Shown here one piece after another: positions 125-61,072 of a stretch of 64,000 nucleotides of DNA. The first letter of the stretch is position 1; each line of letters starts with the position of its first letter. The notes beneath the pieces are model-generated. The model was not told the origin of the DNA. It made no database searches and worked only from the letters and a program-made list of their open reading frames with translations. The stretch spans positions 62,001 to 126,000 of IMG/VR virus record IMGVR_UViG_3300035070_002626; one strand, given 5' to 3'. Made by a program: the position numbers and the translations under genes.

Positions 125-1159
125 TTATAATCCGGCAAACCATGTATCAGAAAAGTCTCTAACTTTAGCAAGTTCGATTTGTGCTGGTTCGTATTCAGGG
201 TGCACAGGACTAAACACATGATGGAAGTTGTATTCCTCAAGCGACCAAGAGCCCCACATTTGCAATTTAGAATATTCCACTATGTCTACATCAAATTCCT
301 TGCAAAAATAGTAAAATGGTTCTATTTCTTGATAATTTTGCTGTTGTAAAATCATCCTGGTATGTAATTTAAAACCTAATTCATGTTTCTTGTTTTGTAA
401 AAAATGCATTGCTTGTAGTAACTTTGGCCATTTCCCACCGCGGCGTATTTTTTCGTATGTGTCGGCTTGTGATGCATCAATACTTACAGTTATTTTGTTA
501 ATGTTATTAACTTTGTTTCCGAATCGATGCCAGTTTTGTTCGCACAGCAACCCATTTGTACCAAAGTCAAATTCTACATTGGGAAATTTATCAATATCAA
601 TTGAGTTTACAAAATCCATTAACATAGGACTAGCAAACACTTCACCTGCCCCGCCAAGTTCTATTTTTATTTTTTTATCTGTTGCGTCAGCAAACAAGTT
701 GTTAGAAAGAGTTTCGCCTAGCTTGCGCTGTTCTTCTTGTTTTGATAATGGAGTTTTTATAATATGACGTCGGCAGCTAGGACAACTTAGATTACAAGTT
801 TGGTCCCCATTGAAACTAATATGATGAGGCATTTCAAATTTTGATGGATCGTCGAATAGTTCTCTTATGTTCGGCGGCACTGACTTGATCTTGTTTAGCC
901 CGTTGTTAGCAATTACAGCACACCAATCTGCATCACAATAAACATAAGATCCATCAATGATACTTTGTCTAATTTTTTGTGCCAGTTCAGACGACAACAA
1001 TTCCTTTAGTGTGTTTTCTTTTAAATTTCCAATGGTAGTTGGCATCCATCGGTTACATCCACACATTCGAACATCGCCCTCTAGGGTAACCTCGATCATA
1101 ACAAATGGTGACAAACAGTACTTCCCTTGGTACTGTTTAGCCGGAAACATTTCAATCAT
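125..1159 (-). CDS. Radical SAM protein with N-terminal SPASM/twitch-like Cys cluster
   Basis: CNLSCPSC (CxxxCxxC) motif, GGAGE motif, N-terminal C...CGC...CDADWC; start at MIEMF overlaps the upstream stop. Confidence 0.85.
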   Translation of the reverse strand: MIEMFPAKQYQGKYCLSPFVMIEVTLEGDVRMCGCNRWMPTTIGNLKENTLKELLSSELAQKIRQSIIDGSYVYCDADWCAVIANNGLNKIKSVPPNIRELFDDPSKFEMPHHISFNGDQTCNLSCPSCRRHIIKTPLSKQEEQRKLGETLSNNLFADATDKKIKIELGGAGEVFASPMLMDFVNSIDIDKFPNVEFDFGTNGLLCEQNWHRFGNKVNNINKITVSIDASQADTYEKIRRGGKWPKLLQAMHFLQNKKHELGFKLHTRMILQQQNYQEIEPFYYFCKEFDVDIVEYSKLQMWGSWSLEEYNFHHVFSPVHPEYEPAQIELAKVRDFSDTWFAGL

Positions 1160-1319
1160 ACTTAACAGCCCGTACTGTGTTGGCATATTTTCGTTTAATC
1201 TTTTTCACAGTGGGCTTGCTGCGAGAAATAACTGAACCTAATGGTGCCGAAACTGTGGCAATACTACCACTTGCTGTTCCGCCTGTACTTACATCTTCTA
1301 GTAACTCTCGAATCTTCAT
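1152..1319 (-). CDS. Small putative virion/head protein (MKIRELLE...)
   Basis: Manual translation, 55 aa; ATGA-type overlaps with neighbours; shares the N-terminal motif of the cluster. Confidence 0.65.
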   Translation of the reverse strand: MKIRELLEDVSTGGTASGSIATVSAPLGSVISRSKPTVKKIKRKYANTVRAVKYD

Positions 1320-1603
1320 GATGCTAATATCTCAAATGTTTCATTATCTATTATAGATACCAGTCCTTCGGTGCACTTTAATCCACGTATTTTAAATTTG
1401 CCTTTGTCAAGTTTTTTTATGCGTATCTTGTAAATACCAGCAGGGGCATCAAGTTGCAACATCTCTGTTAAGTATTGCGGCCCACTCCATATATAATTGC
1501 GCTCGGTAAACATCTCGTCATTGACATATACTCTATATGCAGGCGGATTGGTTTGCCAATCACAATATAAATCAAATTCAATTTTAGTAAAATCTGTTGT
1601 CAT
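1316..1603 (-). CDS. Hypothetical protein (beta-rich, 95 aa)
   Basis: ORF track 1316..1756; start trimmed to MTTDF to remove overlap with the upstream gene. Confidence 0.65.
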   Translation of the reverse strand: MTTDFTKIEFDLYCDWQTNPPAYRVYVNDEMFTERNYIWSGPQYLTEMLQLDAPAGIYKIRIKKLDKGKFKIRGLKCTEGLVSIIDNETFEILAS

Positions 1604-1604
1604 A

Positions 1605-1952
1605 TTAGTAACGTGATTTTCTAGGGTATTTGTCTGCAAGTTTATCACGTTTGAGATTGGCAGAACTAAATGGATCATCCCAAGACGGAGGAAAAAAAGT
1701 ATCAACAAAATTATCAAATACATCTTGTGCACTTGCTGGTCTAGTCCGAGTATCAAATTGTTTGATAAGCAATCCAGCTGCTTTGCCTACACCTGCTTGT
1801 CCCTCACGAGACAGTTTTGCAGCTTGGGCAATAACTTCATCAGATACTTCGCCTTGTGGATCAATCTTTTTAAGATCTTTAATAGCTCTTGCAATAGCAG
1901 GCATTATATCTTCGGGGCCTCGATCTTCGTTGATTACTTCAAACATTTTCAT
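1605..1952 (-). CDS. Hypothetical protein (MKMFEVINE...)
   Basis: ORF track; start trimmed to the ATG after an AAGGAA RBS. Confidence 0.65.
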   Translation of the reverse strand: MKMFEVINEDRGPEDIMPAIARAIKDLKKIDPQGEVSDEVIAQAAKLSREGQAGVGKAAGLLIKQFDTRTRPASAQDVFDNFVDTFFPPSWDDPFSSANLKRDKLADKYPRKSRY

Positions 1953-1963
1953 ACTGTATTCCT

Positions 1964-2152
1964 TTATCTGCCTTGTGCGTAACTGTAACAGCCTTCGGTA
2001 AAACTGTTTGATGCACCAATTGGGCATTCTGATGTTGACTGTATGTTACGAGCTGCTGCCCATGCATATCCAGCTTTGTGGCCTGAACAATCTATTGTAC
2101 AACGATATCCTTTGTATGTCAAGTCTTCATTTACTATGTCATTTATTTTCAT
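1964..2152 (-). CDS. Small Cys-rich protein (CTIDCSGHKAGYAWA...C...SNSFTEGC)
   Basis: ORF track, start trimmed to MKINDIVNE; four spaced Cys. Confidence 0.7.
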   Translation of the reverse strand: MKINDIVNEDLTYKGYRCTIDCSGHKAGYAWAAARNIQSTSECPIGASNSFTEGCYSYAQGR

Positions 2153-2261
2153 ATTTTTTAGCCTCTTGGTATTCTTTCCAATATGTATTACGCTCGTTAG
2201 TCGTTGCTCTACGTACTTCGTGTTCAAGCAGTTTTTTTACATAATGTTGTATGTCTACCAT
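2139..2261 (-). CDS. 40-aa hypothetical protein (MVDIQHYVKKLLEHEVRR...)
   Basis: Manual translation; directly downstream of a TAAATA late promoter. Confidence 0.55.
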   Translation of the reverse strand: MVDIQHYVKKLLEHEVRRATTNERNTYWKEYQEAKKYENK

Positions 2262-2290
2262 TTTTATTCACTTTTCTTCTATGTACGTAT

Positions 2291-2896
2291 TTATTTAACC
2301 CAAGCACCTATACGTCCGTGAACATCTGGATAGTCACGATAAGTGTACCCTTCGGGCGGTGTTGTATCCTCGCCTTCCCAAACAGGGATAAAATGATTGA
2401 TATTACCGTCAAAGTCTTCGTTGCGTCTTAGGTGTACTTCAATTAGCTTGTTGCCTATAAACTCACAGTTCACCCATGGGTGATGTTCTACTAGTTCAGT
2501 TAGCAGTGTAGGAAATGCAAATGATTTGTCGTCTCTGCGCCAGTCGATCCACTTGGTAAATGTATCTTCAGGCTTGCGTCCTTGTACACACAACATTTGC
2601 TTGCTTTCAAAATAGTCTATACTATAATGATCGCCTTCGAAAAACTCACACCAAAAATGTCCCACTGGGAGATGCATTGTTTCTTGATCAAGCCAGATTT
2701 TTTGTGTACCTAGTCCAAGTCCTTGCATGTTAACACAAGGGCGCACAATATAAAAACCCGGATGCGGAACATCAAGTCCGACCGGGCCACAGTTATAATT
2801 TAGTTTACGTGCTAGTATAAGTTTATCCATTGCCCATATGTGATCTGGATTTATGTTTTGCCAAACAAAATCTTCTGCACTGTTTGGCGTGTACAT
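2291..2896 (-). CDS. Putative ATP-grasp-like protein
   Basis: YIVRPCVNMQGLGLG loop and WCEFFEGDHYSID strand resemble ATP-grasp signatures; family call tentative. Confidence 0.5.
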   Translation of the reverse strand: MYTPNSAEDFVWQNINPDHIWAMDKLILARKLNYNCGPVGLDVPHPGFYIVRPCVNMQGLGLGTQKIWLDQETMHLPVGHFWCEFFEGDHYSIDYFESKQMLCVQGRKPEDTFTKWIDWRRDDKSFAFPTLLTELVEHHPWVNCEFIGNKLIEVHLRRNEDFDGNINHFIPVWEGEDTTPPEGYTYRDYPDVHGRIGAWVK

Positions 2897-2898
2897 TA

Positions 2899-3297
2899 TT
2901 ATTTTCCTTTGGTATTGCTTACATTCTTTGCTTTGCCTTTACGGTCTTTGTCAGGATCTTGCCTACGTTTTTTATTAACCGCGGTAGCTATAGCTTTCTT
3001 GCCGCCTTTAGCTCTTAGGCTTGCAGCTTTACTTTTACTGAGACACTTAGGCTTGCCCTCGCCTTCGCTGCTATCACCACATTTGCCAATACGTTCGCCT
3101 TTAGTATTGTAACGATCCCATCCGCCGCCTCCGGCTCCGCCTTTTTTACCTTTGCCAAACCACGCTTTGAGATCTTCTTCTACTTCTACTTCTTCGTTCT
3201 TAACACAGTTGGGCACACGTTTTCCAAACATGGTTTTCATACCATCTTTTTTGTAGCCTTTCCAACACTTCTCTGTGACAATTTCTTCTATAAGCAT
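2899..3297 (-). CDS. Basic mosaic protein with KCWKGY...KRVPNCV and KPKC motifs (T4-like cyanophage-type modules)
   Basis: ORF track; start trimmed to MLIEEIVTE. Confidence 0.7.
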   Translation of the reverse strand: MLIEEIVTEKCWKGYKKDGMKTMFGKRVPNCVKNEEVEVEEDLKAWFGKGKKGGAGGGGWDRYNTKGERIGKCGDSSEGEGKPKCLSKSKAASLRAKGGKKAIATAVNKKRRQDPDKDRKGKAKNVSNTKGK

Positions 3298-3298
3298 G

Positions 3299-3499
3299 TT
3301 ACTTCTTCTTACTATTACCCCAATTAGCGGCACCCTTTTTGCGGCACTGTACTAACGCACCCGATGCATATGCACTTGGCCATACTTTATAACGTGATTT
3401 TACTTTGTGATAGCAAGCATCTTTCTCGCCAGCGGCTTCATCAAACTGTGCTTCTGTCATCATTTCTGTTGATTCATTTAAAACGTCATTGATTTTCAT
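3299..3499 (-). CDS. Small basic protein with KVWPSAYASG motif (DUF5872-like)
   Basis: Motif CYHKVKSRYKVWPSAYASGALVQCRKKG recognised from memory; start MKINDVLNE. Confidence 0.65.
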   Translation of the reverse strand: MKINDVLNESTEMMTEAQFDEAAGEKDACYHKVKSRYKVWPSAYASGALVQCRKKGAANWGNSKKK

Positions 3500-3680
3500 T
3501 TAGTATATCCTTCATTACGCTGGTTGCTGTATCAGTAAAGAGGCGGGGCGCAACTGCATGTATAACAAGAGCGGGTACTAACAACTGTAGTCTTACAGCA
3601 ATTTTGAGTGCATGGCCCATATGTTCTAAGCCAGTTTTGCCTGTTTCTTCTAAATGTAGTTTGCATTGTTTACTAAACAT
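3486..3680 (-). CDS. Small membrane-associated hypothetical protein (DUF6356-like)
   Basis: HL...EH...A pattern plus hydrophobic helix; TAATG overlap with upstream gene. Confidence 0.55.
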   Translation of the reverse strand: MFSKQCKLHLEETGKTGLEHMGHALKIAVRLQLLVPALVIHAVAPRLFTDTATSVMKDILNENQ

Positions 3681-5830
3681 TATTTCTTTTTTCCACTCTT
3701 CATATTGGCACACCAGTGATACATCTTAGCTCGCTCGCCTGAATATTTCTTTGCACGAGCACGTAAATCAGTTACACTACCGTTGCAACTTGCACCTGCT
3801 GCTTTTACACGACCCGGTTTGCTTTTGCCTTTTACTTTACCGTCTGCAAAGTTTTCATCCATTTTGGCTAATTTTGCAGCAATAGCCATTTGTCTACGCT
3901 TTGCTTTACTTTTACCTTTGAATTGCGGAGCATCACTTTGGTAGAAATCATCAATAACATCACCCATTGGGGTACGCTTTGTAATCTTCTCATTAATGCT
4001 TTCTGTGAAAAATGGGCCACTAAGTTCTTGGTCATCCTGGCTTAACATTGCTTTGTTAATATCAGCAATAATGTCTGGAGTTAAATGTCTTGCACGGTTA
4101 ACAGTGTTACTGTTAAAAAATAAATGTACTTCAACAGGAATGTCGCCAAATACTTGTTGTATGGCAATCATTCTGCTGCGACCTTCATGCCCAATGATTT
4201 CTGCTGTACTGCCTTCTGTGTAACTAATAATAAGAAAAGGTGCTCCAATTGCACCACCATTTTTGATATGATCAACTACTTTATCAACTGCCGGAACACC
4301 ACGTCTGCTTTCTGCTAATTTCAAAAACACACTTGGTTTCATCTTAACACGCATGCCAAAATAGTCAACTTCTTGGTTGTTAGGAACAGCACCCCAACCT
4401 TCTTTGTTGTCTATATTTACATCTTCGTTAAATGCTGTATCTGTTGCAGTCTTTGCACTCTTACCGTCAGGATGCTTAGGATTGATACCTACAACTTCGC
4501 CATTGATTAAGTCTGAGATGTTTGATGCTTTGCCAATTCTATCTAATAGCTGATGTAGTTTGTCATTCGCATCGTAGTTACCACTTTCATAGCCACTCTT
4601 ACCACGAACTTCTGTACGCTTGCCAGTTGCGGTATCAGTAATGTTTAACACCATCATATCAGCATCACGTTCTAGTTGTAGCTTGTAACCTTCGTTAACA
4701 CTTTCATTAAGTTTGTATTCGTATGTATCAGTGCCTGTTTTTTCTAACCATTCAAACTTGTCGAAAAACTTCCGGTTAGTTACTTTATATACTGTCAACG
4801 GTAATTTGTTTTGATCTGCATATGATTTTATTGCATTCATAACTTTACCGCCTATGCCCGCACCTCGTTCTGACGTTGAGATTTGTGACATTAAGATTTT
4901 TTCTGGGCGATAACTCTTTGCTGCATCTAATAGTATATGTCCAAAGTCCCCTTTAAGCATATACGTGCCACCACCACCGATCATTTCTGTTGTTGACCAT
5001 GGGACCCCAACTTTACCCCAACTAGTCCAACTAGTTGCACCAATAGCTTTACCGATATGTTTGATTAATGGGTAATCATTATTTAATGGCCACCATTTCT
5101 TATCAAATTCGATATCTACGTATCCATTTCGGATAGCGTCAAATTCTTCTTTAGATACTTCGTTGACACTTTCATTAATGCTTTCTTCGTTTACGTTGCT
5201 AGATCTAATTGCATCATACTTTGCTTGTAAACTTTCTACTAACCCTAGATTATACGCCTTGTTAGCACTGGTGTTTTTAGCTGCTGTTGCATGCAGTAGT
5301 GGAGGACTGCCCTTTTTGTCAATCTTCATACCTAGTTTAGCAGCCTGGCGCTGTGTTTCACCTGGCTTAACGTCAACAGTGAGTGCACTACTAAATCGAG
5401 GATCTTTTGCTTGTGCTTTAGTTGGAATGTAGCCACTTGCTTCTTCAACTTTAGCTTTGGGAATATCGTTGCGATGTTCAAGTTCGCTAGCATCTACTAC
5501 AATTGCTGGCAAACTTTCAAGCCCAGCTTTTTTTGCAGCGGCAAATCTGTGGTGACCGTCAAGAATCATATAACCATCAGTGGTACGGGTTACAACAATA
5601 GGATCACCGTTCCACATGTTTGCTTTCATTTTAACAGCAATGCTTAAAACTTGATCTCCATGCTCTTTGGCATTCAACTTGTCTGTGGATTCAAATCCGT
5701 ATAACTGAGACAATGGTATATCTTTGTCAGCAGAACGCTTCATAAATTCATCAGGTATGTCGGCACCCCTGTAACCAGGGTTGTGCCATAATGTTATTTT
5801 TTCTTTAGATTCAAACCATGATGCTCGCAT
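3680..5830 (-). CDS. 716-aa mosaic protein: ParB/Srx-like domain, GNAT-like domain, second ParB-like domain, basic modules
   Basis: DPIVV...ILDGHHRFAAA (ParB/Srx); ERGAGIGGKVM (GNAT motif A); IIGHEGRSRM; late promoter just upstream. Confidence 0.75.
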   Translation of the reverse strand: MRASWFESKEKITLWHNPGYRGADIPDEFMKRSADKDIPLSQLYGFESTDKLNAKEHGDQVLSIAVKMKANMWNGDPIVVTRTTDGYMILDGHHRFAAAKKAGLESLPAIVVDASELEHRNDIPKAKVEEASGYIPTKAQAKDPRFSSALTVDVKPGETQRQAAKLGMKIDKKGSPPLLHATAAKNTSANKAYNLGLVESLQAKYDAIRSSNVNEESINESVNEVSKEEFDAIRNGYVDIEFDKKWWPLNNDYPLIKHIGKAIGATSWTSWGKVGVPWSTTEMIGGGGTYMLKGDFGHILLDAAKSYRPEKILMSQISTSERGAGIGGKVMNAIKSYADQNKLPLTVYKVTNRKFFDKFEWLEKTGTDTYEYKLNESVNEGYKLQLERDADMMVLNITDTATGKRTEVRGKSGYESGNYDANDKLHQLLDRIGKASNISDLINGEVVGINPKHPDGKSAKTATDTAFNEDVNIDNKEGWGAVPNNQEVDYFGMRVKMKPSVFLKLAESRRGVPAVDKVVDHIKNGGAIGAPFLIISYTEGSTAEIIGHEGRSRMIAIQQVFGDIPVEVHLFFNSNTVNRARHLTPDIIADINKAMLSQDDQELSGPFFTESINEKITKRTPMGDVIDDFYQSDAPQFKGKSKAKRRQMAIAAKLAKMDENFADGKVKGKSKPGRVKAAGASCNGSVTDLRARAKKYSGERAKMYHWCANMKSGKKK

Positions 5831-5845
5831 GTCAGTATTTATGCT

Positions 5846-6816: not shown

Positions 6817-8244
6817 TTAATCTTTGACAACAAGAGTAGTCTTAGGTCCATCTTTCATCAACATGTTAAACGTTTTAAGAAAGTGACGCTTTTGAGTAAT
6901 TCTTTTGTCAATGTCTTGTTGCACCTCTGGGCTTTGTCTAAGGAACAATGACATAAATTTTTCAGCGACTTTTGGAGTTACTTCAACTGTAGTACCATCA
7001 TCAAATTTAATTGGAAACGCTTGTTTGTCTTTTCTACTCGAAATGTTGTCTAGTACACGCAGCGGTTTGCTTTGATATACGTACTCTACGAGTTCTTCTT
7101 CTGGTAGATAATCTTCTACTGCCATTGCATCTAGTGCGTTTTTCTCATCGCCGGGAGAAACATATCCACTACCTGTTCTTGCAGATCCCACAGTGTGGCT
7201 TGATGATGGTGACTTGTCTGCTCCTGCGGCTTTCGCTATACCAGCTGCTACACCACTTAGTGCTGATCCAACCATGCCCGTGTTAGCAGGATTCATCTTA
7301 GATGCTATATGACCTGCGCCACGCAGAGCTGCATATGCAAGTGGATTTTCATCAACCTGCTGTTCTTCGTTTGAAATATCAATTTCAACATCTTGCTTAA
7401 CAGGGCGATTGCCTCTTTTGTCTTTAAAACGCTTGTACTGAGCAAGTGCTTCAATCATTGATTGCATTACACCACTTTGATAAATGTGATATTCAAGTTC
7501 TTCGTACTTGCCTGAATCCAACATGTCAGCTAGACTGCGTAGCTTGTTACCGAGATTATTTTGTAAACTAGTTTCACTGTGTGTACCCATCCCGCCTTTT
7601 GGCAAGATATCAACAGTGTCGCCTTTGTTAACAATAATTGTCTCGTCGACTGTTGCCAGCGTTTTATCGCCGAGTACTGTTGAAAAAATTTCTTTGGCTT
7701 TATTAACAATTGCTGGGCTTGAATCTCCATACAAGCTTTTAACAAGATTGGTTCTCTCACCGTCGCTCATAGTTGGCCATTTAGCACGTATCTCAGTAGC
7801 ACTACTCATGCCTGGGCCAAAGCTTACAGTTGGCAAGTAAGTCATAAACCCGTGTTGTGTCATTGGTTCTGGATTGCGTCTATTAAGTGGTTGCAAATAA
7901 GATCTGCTACCATCTTTCTTTACACCACCCGGGAGAGGTGTTACGCCGCTGTCTTTATCAGATCTAACAAAAATAAGTTGTGTATCTGCTGGATCATAAT
8001 GTTGTGTAATTTCTTGAGGACGAAAGGGCGATTTAACTTGAATAAATCTATGCTTTGGTATTCCAGCAATTTGCGCTAGCTGCTGTTTTAGCCTAAACGG
8101 AAAAGGTCTTGCAGCTTGATCATCAGTTGCAGCAATATACACATCAGCACGGGGAAACGCTTCAACGGCTGCATCGTACAGTGCTTTGTGCCCTGCGTGG
8201 AACGGATGAAACCCTCCTGGAATGACGACTAATTTTTTTAACAT
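6817..8244 (-). CDS. Cytidylyltransferase-like (HIGH motif) nucleotidyltransferase with C-terminal extension
   Basis: N-terminal VVIPGGFHPFHAGH and MSSATEIR motifs. Confidence 0.75.
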   Translation of the reverse strand: MLKKLVVIPGGFHPFHAGHKALYDAAVEAFPRADVYIAATDDQAARPFPFRLKQQLAQIAGIPKHRFIQVKSPFRPQEITQHYDPADTQLIFVRSDKDSGVTPLPGGVKKDGSRSYLQPLNRRNPEPMTQHGFMTYLPTVSFGPGMSSATEIRAKWPTMSDGERTNLVKSLYGDSSPAIVNKAKEIFSTVLGDKTLATVDETIIVNKGDTVDILPKGGMGTHSETSLQNNLGNKLRSLADMLDSGKYEELEYHIYQSGVMQSMIEALAQYKRFKDKRGNRPVKQDVEIDISNEEQQVDENPLAYAALRGAGHIASKMNPANTGMVGSALSGVAAGIAKAAGADKSPSSSHTVGSARTGSGYVSPGDEKNALDAMAVEDYLPEEELVEYVYQSKPLRVLDNISSRKDKQAFPIKFDDGTTVEVTPKVAEKFMSLFLRQSPEVQQDIDKRITQKRHFLKTFNMLMKDGPKTTLVVKD

Positions 8245-28772: not shown

Positions 28773-31700
28773 TTATCCTAAAATAGTTGTCTTCGGAAAT
28801 ACAAGATATTTATCGTATTTGTCCGTCTTACCGTACATATCTACGGGTGTAGTAAACCTCAAACTATTGCCATCGAATGTGGTTGCATTGTTAACTGCAC
28901 TAGTTGCAACATAACCTGCTTCTCCCTGATCGTTGTCTTGGAAGATGCTATTCAATGTAGCAAAGTTTGGTTTGCTCAGTACAGGTGCAAAGTACTTCTC
29001 AAACAGTGCATGCCCTAATGGGTTGTTTGCTAATATGCCAGATGGTGTTCTCATTAGATCGTTCCATTCCGGTGCTAGACTTTCGCCAGCCCAAAAAACA
29101 CTCATCTCCCACATGCCCCAATTTAGCAAATACATGTACTCTTTCATTAGTACACCTGCTTCCTGTGGGTCGTACGGGTCACTTGCGCCAGCATCATACA
29201 TACCATTGTCAATTGCTTGTTCCATTGCTTTAAATAACTCAGTGCCTGTGTATGTTCCTGGGTTATTTTCACTGTCCCAGTTGAGTTCAGTAACTGATCC
29301 TTGAACACCGCCACGTACACCATATAGATGTATTGTATGCATAATGTGTTCAAACACTTCTTCAATGTCTTTAGTTCCAGTGCCGTTCCAGCCGTTGTTG
29401 TTTTTATACCATACCATGTCGTTAACTGCATGCTGGTCTAAAAAATCTGTGTAACCAGCATAAGATGCTGCACCTATATCGGTTAGCCAGTTTGGAGAAT
29501 AAGAACTGCCGCCGCCATACCCAATTCGTTGTGCAGTTTGGTAGCCAGCATGCCAAGTTCCAGCTGCACCATTTAGTGTGCGGATCATTTGTTGTTGTGC
29601 TGTAGTATTGATTCCCGTTGCATCTTTGTCCATTAACAGTTGATAACTTCTACCAACCTTTTTGACCCAGGCATCAGGTACAGCCTCTTGCCCGCCAACT
29701 GCTCCTGCTGCAACAACTAGTATGCCGTTAACCGTTAAGCTTCTGTCAAAGATTTCACTATTAGTAGCGTCAGCAACCAACGATGTTGAAACATACAAAC
29801 CACTTATATTAAATTCAACATCAAACGTAGTGCCAAGTGGCGGTGATGGGTTCCATGCTCCACCGTCTGTTGAATCTTCGTTTGGTATCCAGTTTGCAGT
29901 AAGTTGGTTGTCTAGTATATATCTATCACTGATAAAGTCCACGCGATTTAGTATTTCACCAAACTGTGTGCGTATGTTATAACTAATTCTATCACTTTCA
30001 CCTGGATTGGTATAACAAATCACCCACGCTTTAGTAAAGCCTAATACTCTACCATCTGTTTGTTTTGTGGTCATCCACAATGGCAACACTGTGTTTTCTT
30101 GTCCAACAACATCGACAACTTGATTTCGCATGTTAACCAAACTATTCGGATACACAGTGCTAATGGTTTGATCAACTTCGCCTGTGGTTGGGTCGTATAC
30201 AAAAGAACTGTAATACAATATCAAGTTGTCAAAGTGTTGATCAATTGGCGCATAATAATTAGTTGGCCCAACAGGAAACTCACACTGATTCTCCACACCA
30301 TCTTCGTTTTTATTATTGTATGGATTCTGGGGATGTCTAAGTGCATACGAGTAACAACAACAGATTGAATGATTCTTTGATATGTCTTTTTTACCATTAG
30401 AGTCTGTATACAATGTATCAAACAAAACTTCTTGAGCAACTGGAATAAATCCCAATAATGGCCCAGGAAGTGTTGGTACGAGATCATTTTTATTTGTAAG
30501 CCTGTAAAAGTTATTGCCCAGCGTGTTACCGTCTTTGTCTTCAAGAGCATTAAAGTAATCAGCGTATATTTGGTTACCCACTGTTGGTGATGCGCTCACA
30601 TAACCTTCGACGCGGTTAAATTTGTTCAAACTTTGAGCATAGTTGGCAATCAATGTACTGATCGAACTTCCAAGACTGTGTCCTCCAATTTTGATTTTTG
30701 TTTTAGTGGTGTCGTTTAACACAGTGTACAAACTCTTACCTGGAACATCTGCTGCTCGAACTTCAAGAGGGTCAGGACCAAGACCTTTGTATGCCATAGT
30801 AAATCCATTTTGTGTTTTACCTTTACCAAAGCCGGCAATTGGATTTATAACTTTTCCACTCATAAAGTCTAACGTAAAATCATATGAAGTTTGTGTGCCA
30901 CGCATTGTGATGTATGCAGTATCACCTACTTCTATTAAAAAGCCAAACGGTGCAACACTGCGAACTACCTTAGGCGGATCTAGTTTTTGACCATTGGGAT
31001 CCTTGTTGATGGTTACTGTATAGTCACACCATATAATATCATCTGCTGTGAGTGCTTCGAGTGCTGACCTAAATTTCTCATATCGTAACGGTTCGTTGAT
31101 GTTTACCGGACATTGGTTACTTGGTGCTGGAGTAAAAGTATCGTTTGCTTTAGGATTTGGAATATATTTGTTACCATCCCAACGTTCTGCAGGATCTCCT
31201 GGTTGTCCTTGCCCAACCCAATCTCTAGCTAGTTGACTCATGACATTGGTTAGAAGGTTTAGATCTCTTGCTTCTTCTAAATATGCTTCGCTTACTTGAT
31301 TAAGTGCAGTTACATTCGGATCTCCAATGCTGCCATTGCTAAAGTTTTCATCAACTAATTCTCGAGCTTCGGTGGCTGCTTGATTCGGCACTGTAACAGG
31401 ATACGGCAGATTAATACTTTGCGGCGGCGATTCTCCGAGTTTGTTTACGCCAGTGTCAATTACGTCACTGTACACAACTTCGTATGCAACTGTTCCGTCA
31501 CTGTTTAATGCTTGTGCTGTTTTTATGTTGCCAAGTATTAACTTCTTTCGAAAGTGATTTTTGCTCAGTGCAACCAAATATTCGTCAAGTGTAGCAGTAT
31601 CCAAGCTATATGCATGTGTGTAAGTTACATTTTTTGCAATACCAAAATATGGGTCATCGGCTCTATACACTCTACTAGGCGGAATGATATCAGTATCTTG

Positions 31701-33266
31701 TAACAAACTGTCTACAAGATTCCTGTCTGCATGGTCAGGCATTGCTTTGATATACAATCCTTGGTATGGGCTGTTGTATTCTCTGTCAACAGTGATCCGA
31801 AAAGTCCTACTAACACTAATCAATCCATCTGAGCTGTATGCTACTACTGTGAAATCAAAATTCTTATCCCATGTAGTTTCGGTTGTTGTTAATCTAGTGC
31901 TTGCTTCTTTGTCAAACGTGGTTGTACCGCCGTCAAACGTAAATGTATTAAAGCTAACACGACCTGCAATATGCCCACTTTCAAGTAAACTTAATCCTTG
32001 CGGTAGCAAGTTGTACTGTCCTGGCGTTGAAGGATATGTACCTTGTTTTAACTTAAATTGCAACGACCTGTCACTTGGGTTGCTTGCCAAAACGGAAAAC
32101 ATACTGATTGCACCGTTGCTGATTTCGCCTAAACTGTATATAGGATCGTTAACATCTCTGCCTGGAATCAATGTACCAGTTAACCATGTGACACTACTTT
32201 CGATGTTACCGATGACAGTCATTGTGTATTCGTAAGGTTCACTTACAATGCTGTTGTTGTCTTTCTTGTAAATAGTAATAGCAAATGTGTATTGAAGTTC
32301 TGTTGCACCCTGATCTGGGAAGAATCCAGTTAACCATCCTGTGAATCGATCAAACGTTATGCCCGGGGGAATATCACTACTGTCGCCTTGTTCAATTTCA
32401 AACTCGAATAAATCACCGTCGAGATCCAATCCTTCGATTTGATATGCAAAGAAATTGTCGTGCCTAAACGTTCCTATAATGCCGTTATCCGGATAGTTAA
32501 TAATAAGAGGAGTACGGAATGGCGAAAGATCTGCTGTAAGTACATCAGAATCAGCTGTAAAGTCTGTTGTGTCTGCTGTTAAACTATCTCGGCTAACAAC
32601 ATACATCGAGAATGTTCTTAGGTTTTGATCTTTCCCATCGGTAATTTTTACTGTAAATTCGTATGTTTGGTTAATACTGCGAGTACTAAACGCAAATGGG
32701 TACAAATCAAATTCACTAGCATCGTACCCAACTTGGGCATCATTTGGCAAGTTACTAATTGGCAAAATGTATCCAGTGATGGCACCTGTGAGTGGATTTA
32801 AACTCAAGCCTGGCGGAAGAGTTCCAATGTCAACACTAATAGTCGCAACATCGCCTGGATCTTGATCATTAAAACCAATGGTAATGTTAACTGTATCTCC
32901 ATCAAAGAATGTGCCCAATGAACCAGATGGTGTAGTAAACTGTGGAATATCTTGGCCTGTAACAGTTAATGAAAATGTTCGATCATTAATCTGTCCATCA
33001 GTGCTTGTTGCACGAATTGCAAAAGTTGATGTTACATTTTCGGCAACTTCACTTGGTACACCTTTAACCATTGCTTGTGCTGTTGGCACACCTTCAACAA
33101 TTCCATTTGTTGTTACTTGTACACCTGCAGGCAATTGTCCAGCAATTAGTGAGTAAGTTACAGCACCGCCATCGGGATCAGTTGCCACAATTGGCTGGTG
33201 GAAAAATAGACTCTCGGCTATGGTTCCAAGATTGCCGGCAGGTGTTACCCAGACTGGTTGTGCCAT
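28773..33266 (-). CDS. 1497-aa putative baseplate wedge protein with Ig-like (He_PIG) repeats, inserted class 3 lipase and a second inserted domain
   Basis: LPAGV/LPPGLSL Ig-like repeats; MRGT, GHSLGSS, NDLVP, H lipase motifs; EHIMHTIH domain near the C-terminus. Confidence 0.75.
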   Translation of the reverse strand: MAQPVWVTPAGNLGTIAESLFFHQPIVATDPDGGAVTYSLIAGQLPAGVQVTTNGIVEGVPTAQAMVKGVPSEVAENVTSTFAIRATSTDGQINDRTFSLTVTGQDIPQFTTPSGSLGTFFDGDTVNITIGFNDQDPGDVATISVDIGTLPPGLSLNPLTGAITGYILPISNLPNDAQVGYDASEFDLYPFAFSTRSINQTYEFTVKITDGKDQNLRTFSMYVVSRDSLTADTTDFTADSDVLTADLSPFRTPLIINYPDNGIIGTFRHDNFFAYQIEGLDLDGDLFEFEIEQGDSSDIPPGITFDRFTGWLTGFFPDQGATELQYTFAITIYKKDNNSIVSEPYEYTMTVIGNIESSVTWLTGTLIPGRDVNDPIYSLGEISNGAISMFSVLASNPSDRSLQFKLKQGTYPSTPGQYNLLPQGLSLLESGHIAGRVSFNTFTFDGGTTTFDKEASTRLTTTETTWDKNFDFTVVAYSSDGLISVSRTFRITVDREYNSPYQGLYIKAMPDHADRNLVDSLLQDTDIIPPSRVYRADDPYFGIAKNVTYTHAYSLDTATLDEYLVALSKNHFRKKLILGNIKTAQALNSDGTVAYEVVYSDVIDTGVNKLGESPPQSINLPYPVTVPNQAATEARELVDENFSNGSIGDPNVTALNQVSEAYLEEARDLNLLTNVMSQLARDWVGQGQPGDPAERWDGNKYIPNPKANDTFTPAPSNQCPVNINEPLRYEKFRSALEALTADDIIWCDYTVTINKDPNGQKLDPPKVVRSVAPFGFLIEVGDTAYITMRGTQTSYDFTLDFMSGKVINPIAGFGKGKTQNGFTMAYKGLGPDPLEVRAADVPGKSLYTVLNDTTKTKIKIGGHSLGSSISTLIANYAQSLNKFNRVEGYVSASPTVGNQIYADYFNALEDKDGNTLGNNFYRLTNKNDLVPTLPGPLLGFIPVAQEVLFDTLYTDSNGKKDISKNHSICCCYSYALRHPQNPYNNKNEDGVENQCEFPVGPTNYYAPIDQHFDNLILYYSSFVYDPTTGEVDQTISTVYPNSLVNMRNQVVDVVGQENTVLPLWMTTKQTDGRVLGFTKAWVICYTNPGESDRISYNIRTQFGEILNRVDFISDRYILDNQLTANWIPNEDSTDGGAWNPSPPLGTTFDVEFNISGLYVSTSLVADATNSEIFDRSLTVNGILVVAAGAVGGQEAVPDAWVKKVGRSYQLLMDKDATGINTTAQQQMIRTLNGAAGTWHAGYQTAQRIGYGGGSSYSPNWLTDIGAASYAGYTDFLDQHAVNDMVWYKNNNGWNGTGTKDIEEVFEHIMHTIHLYGVRGGVQGSVTELNWDSENNPGTYTGTELFKAMEQAIDNGMYDAGASDPYDPQEAGVLMKEYMYLLNWGMWEMSVFWAGESLAPEWNDLMRTPSGILANNPLGHALFEKYFAPVLSKPNFATLNSIFQDNDQGEAGYVATSAVNNATTFDGNSLRFTTPVDMYGKTDKYDKYLVFPKTTILG

Positions 33267-44522: not shown

Positions 44523-45212
44523 TTAGAACAATAATTTAAAACCAAACTCGGTGGTAGTGTTTTGCGGTTCATACAATCCGTTGTTAACAGATGAATCGGC
44601 AATGTTCCAGTGCGTGGCAAACACACCATAGTTGTGATTGGGCAACCATTCTAATTCAACTCCATAGCCACTGTCTTGGGTATTAGTTGTTTGAGAATAG
44701 CCTGCTTGGGTTATGTAACTAGTTTGGTTACCACTGATTAGATAGTTAACTTGATATTTGAAATACCCACCACGGTTGTTGTATATTATATTGCCAAGCG
44801 GTGCGTATAGATACTGCGACCTTCTGTTGTATGTGAAGTGTCCAGTAGATGATTGTTTGCCGCCCCAACGATCATTTAGCTGCCGAAAGCCTAGCCCGAT
44901 ATAAAAAGAATTATATTTGTATGATATTTCGCCCGACAGACCTGTTGTGAGGTCATTTTTAGTTTTGCCAGTATTACTCGACGTATAGTCTGTTGTGCCG
45001 ACAAAATACTTTGCATTGCCAACAAATCCGTTTTGATATCGAGACTTGTAATCTTGATATCCAATGCCAGCAAATCCGTATGACGAAGCCTTGGACATTA
45101 AACCCGGCTCGGTATACTTGTAATCGTATAGTTCAACAAAGTACTGCGAAGTATCAGCCGCGGTACTCGGTGTGCCAAACGCTAGTGCAACGGCTGTTAA
45201 GTGCGATTTCAT
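44523..45212 (-). CDS. Outer-membrane beta-barrel protein
   Basis: N-terminal signal-like segment; alternating aromatic beta strands; C-terminal ...EFGFKLLF beta-signal. Confidence 0.7.
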   Translation of the reverse strand: MKSHLTAVALAFGTPSTAADTSQYFVELYDYKYTEPGLMSKASSYGFAGIGYQDYKSRYQNGFVGNAKYFVGTTDYTSSNTGKTKNDLTTGLSGEISYKYNSFYIGLGFRQLNDRWGGKQSSTGHFTYNRRSQYLYAPLGNIIYNNRGGYFKYQVNYLISGNQTSYITQAGYSQTTNTQDSGYGVELEWLPNHNYGVFATHWNIADSSVNNGLYEPQNTTTEFGFKLLF

Positions 45213-58478: not shown

Positions 58479-60017
58479 ATGCGAGAATATTTAGATATTA
58501 TCACCGAAGGGGTGGGCCTAGCGAACCGTAAACCGGGAGAAAAATTTGCAAATCCTCAGGGAGATATATTAACGTTCCAAAGTTTAGACTTTTTTCCTGG
58601 AAAAGACTCATATGAGGATGAAGAAACAACCAACACTGCACTACTAGATTTGGGCGCACAGTTGGGAATTGACCCTCAAGAAATACAATGGGCAAATGCA
58701 CAAGGATCAAACAAAGCGTTTGGTATAGCAAGGTTTGTAGACGGTGCAGGCAAGGACTACTTAGTAGGTAGATGGTTTCAAAAAATTAATGCTAACAAAA
58801 CATTAAACAGATTTCCAAATGATTTGCCAGGCGGTTTTAAATATCAAAGTAAAGCGGCTGTTAAAGAAAATTCTGGATACAAACCTACCGAAATTCTTAC
58901 ACAATTACAGAATCAGACACCTGCTAGCATCGTAAAACAAATTGTTGCAAAATTTGGCGCAGACTCAGACGAAGTACGTGCTACTAATGCATTCATGGAA
59001 CAAGATTTTCCAATGAACATTCCACGTGGCGAAATGAATGCCGAAGCATTTACAAATTACTTTTGTGAAATACTACAGCCAATGGCACTTATTATGGGCA
59101 AAAATGTAGGCGGAAATGCAGACGAAGCAGAACAGATTTTCTTTGGTGGATCTGGATACAGTGATTGCACAATTAGTTTTAATGCAGGAACCACAGATGG
59201 ATTATTTGATAGCTTGTTAGTCAACCCTCAAGGCAAACAAATTAAGATATCAAGTAAAGCCGCTGCCGGGGCAAATGCTAGTATTGTTAACTTGCTGAAA
59301 AGTGTACAAGACATGCGCACTGCACCTGCTGGACAGAAATTGTTAAAACAATATGCTGAAGCAGTTAGTATTATGGAAATTATCAAGAACGGCGGACACA
59401 CAGATGGATGCCTAAATCTTGCCATTGCACTAGACTTTATCTCGCCAGAAGAAAAGCAACAAGTAAAATCATTAGCCGGTATGGGACCAGATGACGATGT
59501 AATGAGTGTGATTACCAGCGATAAACTACAAGGTCTATACAATGGTCGTAATGCTCGCGACATGAGCCGCATTATTCCAATCGAACACATGTTGGCTTCT
59601 ATTGCATACCCAATTGCTGAAATTGTAAACACCGAAACAGACTTTGGCGAAGCAGCAAGTGCAATATTAAATCATAGTGCATTGGTACAGATGTACACAC
59701 TGAGTAGTAATAGCGACGACACTATTAACGTCAATGATTTCCAATGTGTGTATCCAAGTAACACAGTTACTGGTGTGCTTATGAGAGCTGATAAAACATA
59801 TATGAGTACACAAGGCAAGGGAAACTTTGTGTTTAAAATTCTCAAAAATGGTGCCAGTGATGCTGAAACAGAAATTGCTGATGTTAGCACAGATATTCCA
59901 AATACACAGCCAGTAAAGAAAAAGGCTGCGCCTGGACAAACTACTAGTAATGTCAAAGCACAGCCTCGGGGAGGGGACCTGGATAACAAGTCCCTAGGGC
60001 GTGAACGTAGAACTTAG
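58479..60017 (+). CDS. 512-aa hypothetical (putative virion) protein
   Basis: Long ORF; MREYLDIITE N-terminus resembles the shared head-protein motif. Confidence 0.75.
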   Translation: MREYLDIITEGVGLANRKPGEKFANPQGDILTFQSLDFFPGKDSYEDEETTNTALLDLGAQLGIDPQEIQWANAQGSNKAFGIARFVDGAGKDYLVGRWFQKINANKTLNRFPNDLPGGFKYQSKAAVKENSGYKPTEILTQLQNQTPASIVKQIVAKFGADSDEVRATNAFMEQDFPMNIPRGEMNAEAFTNYFCEILQPMALIMGKNVGGNADEAEQIFFGGSGYSDCTISFNAGTTDGLFDSLLVNPQGKQIKISSKAAAGANASIVNLLKSVQDMRTAPAGQKLLKQYAEAVSIMEIIKNGGHTDGCLNLAIALDFISPEEKQQVKSLAGMGPDDDVMSVITSDKLQGLYNGRNARDMSRIIPIEHMLASIAYPIAEIVNTETDFGEAASAILNHSALVQMYTLSSNSDDTINVNDFQCVYPSNTVTGVLMRADKTYMSTQGKGNFVFKILKNGASDAETEIADVSTDIPNTQPVKKKAAPGQTTSNVKAQPRGGDLDNKSLGRERRT

Positions 60018-61072
60018 AGGCATTGTTTCTGGTTCACAACCTGTAGTTTTGGATTTCCTAAATTGTTGAGTTGATCGGCACTAACTGTGACAGCAATGCT
60101 AGATTGTAATTCTAGCCAACTGTTGATTACAACTCCTTGGCCAGTTGGCTGAATCATTTTAGTAGCGGGCATATTGGTACCTTGGGTGAGTCCACTCAAT
60201 TCGGGTATGTTGTAACACCCAGCAGTAAGATTTCCAAATGTTAGCAACAATTGTGGCCCTGGCGATGTTAACCCTTGCACAAGACGCTGACCACGTATGT
60301 TGTCAAATCTATGATAAGTTCCGTTTTTGTTGCTGGATCTAGTTTTTAACTGTGCCCAGTATGTTGCATTTGTTGTATTTCTACCGGTGGTTTCTAATAC
60401 TTCTGCGATAGCAGCAACATAGTCTTTGTTCCACTTAACAGAAAAATTTACATTTAATATCATATTTCGATCAGCATCAACATTGTAGCCTGCTTTGCCT
60501 ATTGCAACATCAAATGCTCGTTGAGGATATGCTCTTAATATCAGATCGATTAACTTGTCACCGGCTGCATTTTCTTCTTGATAACTTTCAAACATAGTAG
60601 AAATTCGATTGCCGTCAAGCTCTCCAGTGCTGCGAGATTTTCCAAACGCACGATCAGCAACAGCATTACCTTGTACACTAACATTCATAGTCAGTTGTGT
60701 GCTGTTTGTTGTATTTTCTTTGCTTGTTATCTCATAGTCGTGTATCCAACCTGAGCTGTAATTAAGCAGTTCATGATAGCTAAGATCTCTATCTTTGCCA
60801 GTGCCAGATGTTTCGCTATCACTGACAACAATTGATCCAACTGCGTCATTGATTGCTTTTGCAAAACAATTGTTACGAGCAGCTTGTTCGTCAACACCAG
60901 TGCATTGCACACGCACCTTGTATACTTTTTCACGTTTTGTTGTTAGCCATCTACCTGCAACAAGTATAATTGCAGCAGGGCTTGGTTGCAGCAGGATTGA
61001 AACACTATTAGCAGTCACTGGGGTGGTAAAAATACACCCCAGTAATGCCATTGTGGTTAACACACGTTGCAC
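60014..61072 (-). CDS. Exported protein with FlgT-N/LPP20-like domain
   Basis: Signal peptide; GVDEQAARNNCFAKAINDAVG...SGWIHDYEI. Confidence 0.6.
   Translation of the reverse strand: MQRVLTTMALLGCIFTTPVTANSVSILLQPSPAAIILVAGRWLTTKREKVYKVRVQCTGVDEQAARNNCFAKAINDAVGSIVVSDSETSGTGKDRDLSYHELLNYSSGWIHDYEITSKENTTNSTQLTMNVSVQGNAVADRAFGKSRSTGELDGNRISTMFESYQEENAAGDKLIDLILRAYPQRAFDVAIGKAGYNVDADRNMILNVNFSVKWNKDYVAAIAEVLETTGRNTTNATYWAQLKTRSSNKNGTYHRFDNIRGQRLVQGLTSPGPQLLLTFGNLTAGCYNIPELSGLTQGTNMPATKMIQPTGQGVVINSWLELQSSIAVTVSADQLNNLGNPKLQVVNQKQCL

Follow-up and report, generated by a model that had tools for sequence, protein, structure and literature searches.

We analyzed a 716-amino-acid (aa) modular protein encoded on the minus strand (3680..5830; ATG start, stop codon 3680-3682) of a 64,000-nucleotide stretch of DNA, hereafter the window, which comprises positions 62001-126000 of the 299,910-bp IMG/VR virus record IMGVR_UViG_3300035070_002626 (CheckV completeness 86%). 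This protein is probably the polyprotein precursor of several head-cargo proteins, processed by the prohead protease of the phage. The reading draws on a modular anatomy, a motif rule at the module junctions, depletion of the same motif from module interiors, N-terminal leaders across the family, module shuffling with break-points at the junctions, and a protease gene in the genome. A preliminary description of this DNA had located the open reading frame (ORF) correctly, without its strand, and had proposed a protease-processed polyprotein releasing injected effector enzymes. The modules, their exchange at junctions, the motif, the protease gene and the family leaders agree with that proposal, whereas the leader of the protein itself fits loosely and the NTPase and acetyltransferase assignments depend on weak matches.

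Module architecture and junction motif

Module limits were taken from BLAST break-points against 116 relatives and from profile searches. The segments are given below from N- to C-terminus in window coordinates; arrows denote junctions here and throughout.

5810..5830, minus: possible leader or propeptide, residues 1-7, MRASWFE (MRASWFE↓S), ending in Glu (E7); loose fit to the family leader
5441..5809, minus: module A, residues 8-130, ParB/Srx N-terminal domain with DGHHR (PF02195), ending in KVEE
5234..5440, minus: module B, residues 131-199, small and basic (pI 9.9), ending in NLGLVE
5159..5233, minus: spacer, residues 200-224, with three tandem sites VNE, INE, VNE
4691..5158, minus: module C, residues 225-380, putatively GNAT-like (RGAGIGGKVM), ending in LNESVNE
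4424..4690, minus: module D, residues 381-469, conserved 89 aa, ending in AFNE
3989..4423, minus: module E, residues 470-614, predicted ParB/Srx-like fold with GHEGRSR, ending in ESINE
3854..3988, minus: module F, residues 615-659, small and basic (pI 9.9), ending in KMDE
3683..3853, minus: module G, residues 660-716, basic C-terminal module (pI 10.4), always last and with no terminal site

A hydrophobic-x-Glu motif is present at every module junction. All linker strings quoted in the preliminary description were located, at residues 213-224 (VNEESINESVNE), 373-380 (KLNESVNE), 466-470 (AFNED), 608-614 (FTESINE) and 657-660 (MDEN), and its (I/V/L)NE-type boundaries were extended by two junctions of the same type (KVEE↓A, 127-131, and GLVE↓S, 196-200) as well as the possible leader. 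With six [ILV]NE motifs the protein has the most of any ORF in the genome, approximately 0.5-0.7 being expected, and 11 of its 15 [ILVMFYW]xE motifs lie at junctions or in the leader. Furthermore, the motif is depleted within modules: three copies are present where shuffling predicts 9.1 (P = 0.0085), and the ratio of observed to expected is 0.33, the genome median being 1.18. Family-wide, the observed and expected interior motifs were 0 and 7.1 for module A, 0 and 3.6 for module B, 4 and 11.4 for module D, and 7 and 19.9 for module E (0-0.35 of expectation).

Junctions across the family were read with profiles trimmed of linker residues, using the 116 database relatives and the ORFs of 80 IMG/VR loci. 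Each different neighboring context was counted once, and background frequencies were 32% for hydrophobic residues and 6.5% for Glu. Glutamate occupied a fixed offset before module D in 68/71 contexts (P3 hydrophobic in 60/68) and before module G in 56/56 (P3 hydrophobic in 49/56), where the junction is the constant x-x-E↓NFADGK. The ends of modules B (Glu 37/38; P3 hydrophobic 37/37) and D (Glu 64/68; P3 hydrophobic 58/64) gave similar values. P3 was hydrophobic in 88-97% of D and G junctions whatever the neighbor, compared with the 32% background. P2 was free, with N the commonest residue and S, T, A, K, V, Q and E also found, and P1' was G, A, S, N or D. The 241 clusters of an independent set had Glu before module D in 114/134 contexts (P3 hydrophobic in 111/114), the other 20 carrying the motif 4-6 residues further upstream, and Glu at the end of module D in 111/117.

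The modules differ in how closely they resemble known domains. Module A matched ParB_N (PF02195) above the Pfam cut-off (28.2 vs 26.3 bits, residues 76-118, over DGHHR) and 12 PHROG ParB-like families, bearing out the ParB/Srx-like domain of the preliminary description. The second ParB-like domain claimed there, with GHEGRSR, corresponds to module E and is supported at the fold level only: the top Foldseek and VIA matches of its AF2 model (pLDDT 83) were all sulfiredoxin, ParB, Noc, PadC or Osa, albeit weak (Foldseek E 1.6e-2, TM 0.38-0.5; VIA Z 5.4), while the hhalign profile-profile comparison with module A aligned GHEGRxR with DGHHR without reaching significance. A GNAT-like identity for module C is weakly supported by motif A and by weak matches. 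Module C of the 716-aa protein was without a Pfam match; its homologue in P0058 matched PF13508 below the cut-off (22.3 vs 27 bits), a PDB profile search returned phosphinothricin acetyltransferase over motif A (E 0.065), and the Atlas neighbors were viral GNAT clusters (~0.9). Module D, confidently modeled by AF2 (pLDDT 90), had no fold match in PDB, BFVD or a wide VIA search, with nothing above Z 3.8, and is predicted to be a new fold; a profile search of 1.84 billion representative proteins placed it in 241 representative clusters. Modules B, F and G are basic (pI 9.9-10.4), as had been described. Residues 607-716 gave a 44% BLAST match to part of a DUF6321-annotated protein of phage Sf-CH8, and DUF6321 was absent from the Pfam hits of module G at E values up to 1.

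Module exchange, the prohead protease and family leaders

Among 227 module-bearing proteins, 80 module orders were found, and the relatives as a whole, about 360, give at least 80. The preliminary description had counted colinear orthologues without module exchange among its refuting outcomes; modules are exchanged exactly at the linkers in relatives, and the colinear-only outcome was not found. Extra modules in relatives include a second GNAT, NT5C, a cytidylyltransferase-like domain, Cu/Zn SOD, a poly(A)/CCA polymerase head domain, GH19, amidoligase, DUF5661 modules and a Pol I fragment. In P0009, an otherwise colinear relative with flanks more than 90% identical, a different GNAT takes the place of module C, the exchange running precisely from ...ESINE↓ to ...ESVNE↓. 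The 19-nt direct repeat AATGAAAGTGTNAACGAAG flanks module C on both sides, with one mismatch, and the ES(I/V)NE codons recur.

Break-points and read depth in metagenomes were located at the same joints. The match of metagenome contigs to the gene ends at window positions 3856, 4423 and 4705, which correspond to codon E659, the first base of codon 470 and codon E376, respectively. In X1 and X2, the largest of the DNA runs, modules G and F had a depth of 110-400 against a single-copy level of 5-13; in run X7 the corresponding values were 67-92 and approximately 4, and module D reached 36-56 in run X1. Overall, the G/F and D cassettes had 4-80 times the depth of the remaining gene. This excess together with the break-points indicates that single water samples contain the cassettes in many different settings, bounded by junction codons. 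As a separate observation, at loci L021-L024 and similar ones the upstream gene has ...AFNLGLVK at its end, and an A-rich overlap, GTAAAATG, holds the start of the following family gene in a different frame; this arrangement could represent either tandem family genes or a frameshift that splits one polyprotein.

The gene belongs to an uncultured marine T4-like myovirus with a genome of approximately 350 kb. Head genes are in T4 order, namely portal (PF07230), a 71-aa gene, an acidic 279-aa protein, Peptidase_S77, a 363-aa protein in the scaffold position, and Gp23 (PF07068). T4-related jumbo phages of 285-470 kb (Vibrio phage 2.275.O, PA5oct, the RaK2/121Q group and Sinorhizobium phage Phosso) have capsid proteins with 61-66% identity to the one encoded here, and related IMG/VR contigs give a genome size of about 355 kb as extrapolated from CheckV completeness. 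A nucleotide search against phage records returned no match.

The Peptidase_S77 prohead protease gene (PF03420, E 8e-27) lies between Portal_T4 and Gp23 at genome (G000) positions 245158-245784. The T4 homologue, gp21, has the specificity L/I-X-E and cuts after Glu, fragmenting the scaffold and trimming N-terminal propeptides of 7-65 residues off head-retained proteins (PMC9026906). The junction motif of the 716-aa family, as read from the sequences, equals this specificity, so that the proposed link to a T4-type prohead protease holds for both the linker and the encoded enzyme. This identity argues for cleavage at the junctions. No protein of the genome has a greater motif excess than the scaffold-position protein adjoining the protease (27 vs 13.1, z = 5), the S77 protease itself is also enriched in hydrophobic-x-Glu, and four copies precede the Gp23 profile match of the capsid protein, within a stretch of 44 residues. 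The T4 Gp23 propeptide was not alignable to the capsid N-terminus, the BLAST match spanning residues 160-374 only, so that HLAE↓N, the capsid cut site suggested here, was picked out by inspection. The leader-bearing ORFs, the acidic 279-aa protein and the scaffold-position protein matched PHROG families of unknown function or none at all. All four cultured phages with module homologues (4/4) are T4-like and S77-bearing, and S77 was also present in 4/5 IMG/VR contigs that were at least 41% complete.

The N-terminus of most family proteins is a leader of eight residues, M-[KR]-phi-x-[DE]-phi-x-E, placed directly before diverse first modules (e.g. MKISDLTE↓DGRIVKG, MKFKDIKE↓APKT and MRIRDITE↓GVGR), and the first module after the leader is in the same register as after an internal junction. 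In the independent set, 67/131 leaders followed the strict pattern and 103/131 had a motif ending within the first 15 residues. T4 IPII and IPIII start with the capsid-targeting sequence MKTYQEFIAE and IPI starts with MKTFKEF; homology of the family leader to MKTYQEFIAE was not demonstrable. Residues 8 and 10 of the T4 capsid-targeting sequence control processing (PMC9026906). RsoM2USA_385, a stand-alone 165-aa homologue of module E and the sole one in a cultured non-marine phage, starts with MQTFKQFLSE↓D and is encoded 3.7 kb from the RsoM2USA S77 protease. A strict leader search of the genome yielded nine ORFs, of which five are within 8 kb of the gene under study (window -2388..3499) and another, the 71-aa gene, lies between the portal and protease genes.

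The 716-aa precursor would be made as one 79-kDa chain, its expression and timing being likewise putative, and would enter the prohead core. There a gp21-type S77 protease would cut after the Glu of each hydrophobic-x-Glu junction, as the motif identity suggests, giving about seven pieces of 5-18 kDa: two with the ParB/Srx fold, one GNAT-like, module D, and three small basic peptides. These pieces would stay with the DNA and probably be delivered into the host in the manner of T4 IPI-III and Alt. Since each module has its own C-terminal cut site, any order would give the same mature products, and the short repeated linker DNA may act as micro-homology for recombination; together, order-independent products and micro-homology would explain free shuffling among related phages.

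Known systems and alternative readings

The family resembles the T4 internal proteins (IPs) IPI-III and Alt in several respects: the phage is of T4 type with Peptidase_S77, a Gp23 capsid and a T4 portal; a short N-terminal leader ends in hydrophobic-x-Glu; the proteins are diverse, fast-evolving, partly basic and encoded in a variable locus; and T4 Alt is an enzyme cut at both ends. Injection and effector roles are proposed by analogy with these proteins. The T4 IPs differ in being single small proteins that shed only a propeptide, whereas here up to seven or more modules are chained with internal sites. Furthermore, the family leader has 8 residues and that of T4 has 10, the 716-aa protein has an atypical leader, and its packaging and cleavage are predictions from sequence.

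The preliminary description considered the protein akin to polyvalent proteins, which holds by analogy, given seven modules and 80 orders in 227 proteins. Polyvalent proteins, which belong to phages and conjugative elements, also combine many unrelated enzymatic domains (2-15 domains in one polypeptide), ParB-like and GNAT domains included, in very variable order, and delivery with the DNA and processing into units have likewise been proposed for them. The proposed processing enzyme is an embedded zincin-like metallopeptidase (PMC5512222). The analogy does not extend to such a peptidase, as no peptidase family was detected in the 716-aa protein (Pfam at E up to 1, PHROGs) or in nine relatives, and the units here are instead bounded by prohead-protease motifs. 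The polyvalent hallmarks MuF, DarA-N, N4 vRNAP, ART, helicases and methylases are absent. The MuF-type polymorphic toxins of temperate phages join a constant head-targeting part to interchangeable cargo, with one cargo domain each, no known chain of protease sites and another targeting domain. In phiKZ-like giants, where the cleavage motif is S/A/G-x-E, many ejection and inner-body proteins of the head (201phi2-1, and the phiKZ gp175 and SPN3US gp245 substrates) are cut after Glu by a gp21-related protease; they differ in that cleavage mostly removes propeptides, the phages are of another lineage, and comparable module shuffling is not described. Redundant neighboring cleavage sites, like the VNE-INE-VNE spacer of the 716-aa protein, are present in phiKZ-like phages (PMC9026906).

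Cyanomyoviruses, which also carry S77, encode long lysine-rich proteins sharing module F, part of module G, and the modules of 66-aa and 132-aa ORFs of the window. S-SCSM1 ORF29, Sf-CH8 gp72 and a 1006-aa protein of P-TIM68 share modules with the family and with the small ORFs of the window at 44-80% identity, have several junctions after hydrophobic-x-Glu, and are encoded beside terminase or structural genes. They differ from the family in being without modules A-E and the MK leader and in consisting mostly of small basic modules in place of enzymes. ORF29 lies beside the large terminase gene, and its 'virion protein' label is that of the depositors in GenBank; the depositors ran virion mass spectrometry, and the supplement of their paper holds no list of detected proteins. 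The label cannot stem from homology, because BLAST matches only hypothetical proteins. NMNAT/cytidylyltransferase-like enzymes have repeatedly been found in cyanophage virions (PMC9602691). Together with the leaders and the RsoM2USA protein, these cyanophage virion data point to packaging of the 716-aa family. It is conceivable, albeit somewhat doubtful, that a combinatorial cargo-cassette system is common to marine T4-like phages of the ~350-kb clade and of the cyanomyoviruses, each module having its own prohead-protease site and the linker being both protease site and recombination joint. The literature searched, with incomplete coverage, yielded no account of shuffled, protease-site-delimited polyproteins and nothing specific on the DUF names or on polyprotein cargo.

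Several observations weigh against the reading as a processed head-cargo precursor. No cultured phage carries the 716-aa protein, and for it and its close relatives cleavage, packaging and injection are all inferred. Its start, MRASWFE, has seven residues, a Glu end and W at P3, a poor fit to the leader consensus, and the neighboring 475-aa family protein is without a leader. Some junctions have K or T at P3 (KNE, TNE), and the Glu and preceding residues are partly conserved as module ends, so that the junction counts are not fully independent. In the AF2 model the FNE of module D forms a helix end rather than a floppy linker. The SOD, CCA-adding enzyme, NT5C and Pol I fragment of relatives would be odd for injected effectors. 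The promoter-like ATAAATA occurs within 45 nt upstream in 6/110 family ORFs of other loci. A prediction of the protease-linker complex gave no answer.

The main rival is an uncut multidomain protein of the polyvalent type, which would work as one chain, packaged or not, its motif-bearing ends being structural caps or recombination remnants. The modules abut with almost no linker, the helix-end position of the module D FNE is consistent with this rival, and the repeated linker DNA, 19 nt around module C, means that recombination alone could keep the joints alike. Recombination scars, however, would preserve DNA, whereas a degenerate protein pattern (P2 free, P3 hydrophobic, P1 Glu) is found across unrelated neighbors. 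The complex prediction lent no support to protease binding and is, by the tool's own terms, evidence neither way. An uncut chain is also difficult to reconcile with depletion of the motif inside modules, with the same register after an N-terminal leader, and with a motif that is the specificity of the resident protease and is enriched in the scaffold-position protein. This rival is considered unlikely, since it leaves the constancy of P1 Glu and hydrophobic P3 and the avoidance of the motif in interiors unexplained.

Cutting at the junctions could alternatively take place in the cytoplasm, releasing auxiliary enzymes through S77 acting outside the head, a host glutamyl endopeptidase, or the help of ClpA, ClpP or DnaJ. 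Metabolic modules in relatives (SOD, NT5C, CCA-adding enzyme and cytidylyltransferase) would suit such a role, and so would a locus beside ClpA (44/80) and DnaJ (34/80) in a phage that has ClpP, and a protein which, like its 475-aa neighbor, is without a clean leader. In T4, by contrast, gp21 works on proteins already assembled into the prohead core (PMC9026906). Most family members bear leaders, the module E homologue of RsoM2USA carries a near-copy of the T4 capsid-targeting sequence, and related cyanophage proteins and NMNAT-like enzymes are present in purified virions, making cytoplasmic release quite improbable.

An assembly artefact, i.e. a chimeric ORF built from repeats common to different metagenome phages, is extremely improbable. 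The G/F and D cassettes do occur in many contexts within the same samples, a setting in which assemblers create chimeras, and some relatives may be chimeric (e.g. P0107, with the Pol I fragment, on a 5.8-kb contig). Artefact is dismissed for the 716-aa gene because an identical protein is predicted on four separate contigs (P0001-P0004, the longest 137.5 kb), colinear versions of 88% identity are present on further contigs (P0005 and P0006), three independent studies supply overlapping contigs that cover the gene and differ little from it, and most of its 31-mers are present in 14 or more DNA runs of marine, seawater or estuary origin, contributed by no fewer than 12 studies.

Locus, neighboring genes and significance

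The locus is a variable island in a conserved frame of DnaJ, ClpA, the island, small leader ORFs and a phrog_3577 gene. ClpA lies upstream beside the island in 44 of the 80 loci and DnaJ in 34. Features around the 716-aa gene are as follows (window coordinates).

11789-12604, minus: DnaJ gene
9480-11765, minus: ClpA/ClpB-type AAA+ unfoldase gene
6817..8244, minus: 475-aa multi-module neighbor with a cytidylyltransferase-like N-terminus and family modules
5836-5843, minus: late-promoter-like CATAAATA, 5 nt before the ATG of the 716-aa gene
3299..3499, minus: 66-aa ORF with leader MKINDVLNE↓ and a basic WPSAYASG module; weak DUF5872 match
2899..3297, minus: 132-aa basic ORF, MLIEE↓IVTE↓KCW..., with two small modules also found in cyanomyovirus proteins
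1964-2152, minus: small leader ORF, MKINDIVNE↓
1605-1952, minus: small leader ORF, MKMFEVINE↓
1152-1319, minus: small leader ORF, MKIRELLE↓

The WPSAYASG module of the 66-aa ORF is also present in cyanophage P-TIM68 and in the virion-labeled protein of S-SCSM1. The small leader ORFs (55-242 aa; M[KR]-phi-x-[DE]-phi-x(x)-E) cluster at window 1152-3499 and G000 59612-60340, resembling a hyperplastic internal-protein locus, while three further ones are dispersed (G000 160800, 207145 and 219505). A 64-aa DUF6356 ORF (window 3486-3680, minus) is found next to family genes in 7/80 loci; its ATG (3678-3680) shares one base with the polyprotein stop codon (3680-3682), suggesting translational coupling.

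ClpA is full-length, with Clp_N, two AAA domains and D2-small, and has ATAAATA 24 nt upstream, and the DnaJ gene encodes a J domain and a C-terminal domain. A ClpP protease gene is 27 kb away (G000 44562-45137). ClpAP degrades processively, without site-specific cuts. The ClpA-like 'ATP-dependent protease' was considered as the processing enzyme and rejected as an AAA+ unfoldase; processing by ClpA, with ClpP, is unlikely because this machine is not site-specific.

The late promoter placed 6 nt upstream by the preliminary description has a promoter-like ATAAATA core, but it is 5 nt from the ATG and CATAAATA differs from the canonical TATAAATA. The ATAAATA core is under-represented in the genome, and it is plausibly a late promoter, since 28 of its 55 copies are at most 40 nt upstream of same-strand starts; the genes it precedes include portal, tail and ClpA. 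Late expression of the 716-aa gene is thus plausible from its upstream sequence, and the promoter is not shared across the family, most of whose genes adjoin or overlap the gene before them. The spacing of ATAAATA to starts falls into two groups, mostly approximately 16-36 nt, with eight genes at 1-5 nt before the ATG (window 5836-5843; G000 140530, 203361, 211360, 217483, 246952, 252402 and 269988). The short spacing would give leaderless or nearly leaderless late mRNAs, or would point to a second role of the motif.

Further genes were observed in the window and the genome. A 340-aa protein with a CxxxCxxC radical-SAM-like signature (CNLHCPQC) is encoded within the head gene cluster, between the 71-aa core-like gene and the portal region (G000 246949-247971, minus), and a second radical SAM/SPASM protein lies at window 125-1186. 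A 289-aa GH19-like lysozyme (window 13340-14209, minus) has ATAAATA 27 nt upstream and a C-terminal segment that, by eye only, resembles a peptidoglycan-binding repeat; elsewhere, the family polyprotein P0081 contains a homologous GH19 module as a fusion. A 1497-aa ORF without a PHROG match (window 28773-33266, minus) adjoins a baseplate/tail-fibre-like 837-aa protein, and a 4506-aa ORF lies at G000 273839-287359 (plus).

If the cargo-cassette system exists, any enzyme could be plugged into the polyprotein, packed in the head, cut free and injected. Metabolic or anti-defence enzymes (ParB/Srx, GNAT, NMNAT-like, NT5C, SOD and CCA-adding) would then ride in the particle instead of depending on early expression. 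If the head-cargo reading is true, abundant ocean phages would hand over ready-made enzymes at infection. The T4 internal-protein paradigm would grow from single small proteins to shuffled multi-enzyme polyproteins, suggesting a natural design by which several proteins are loaded into T4-type capsids from one gene. Furthermore, the rule of a leader followed by modules ending in hydrophobic-x-Glu would reveal virion cargo in metagenomes of uncultured phages. Hundreds of protein clusters, so far uncharacterised, would acquire a role, module D by itself accounting for 241 representative clusters.

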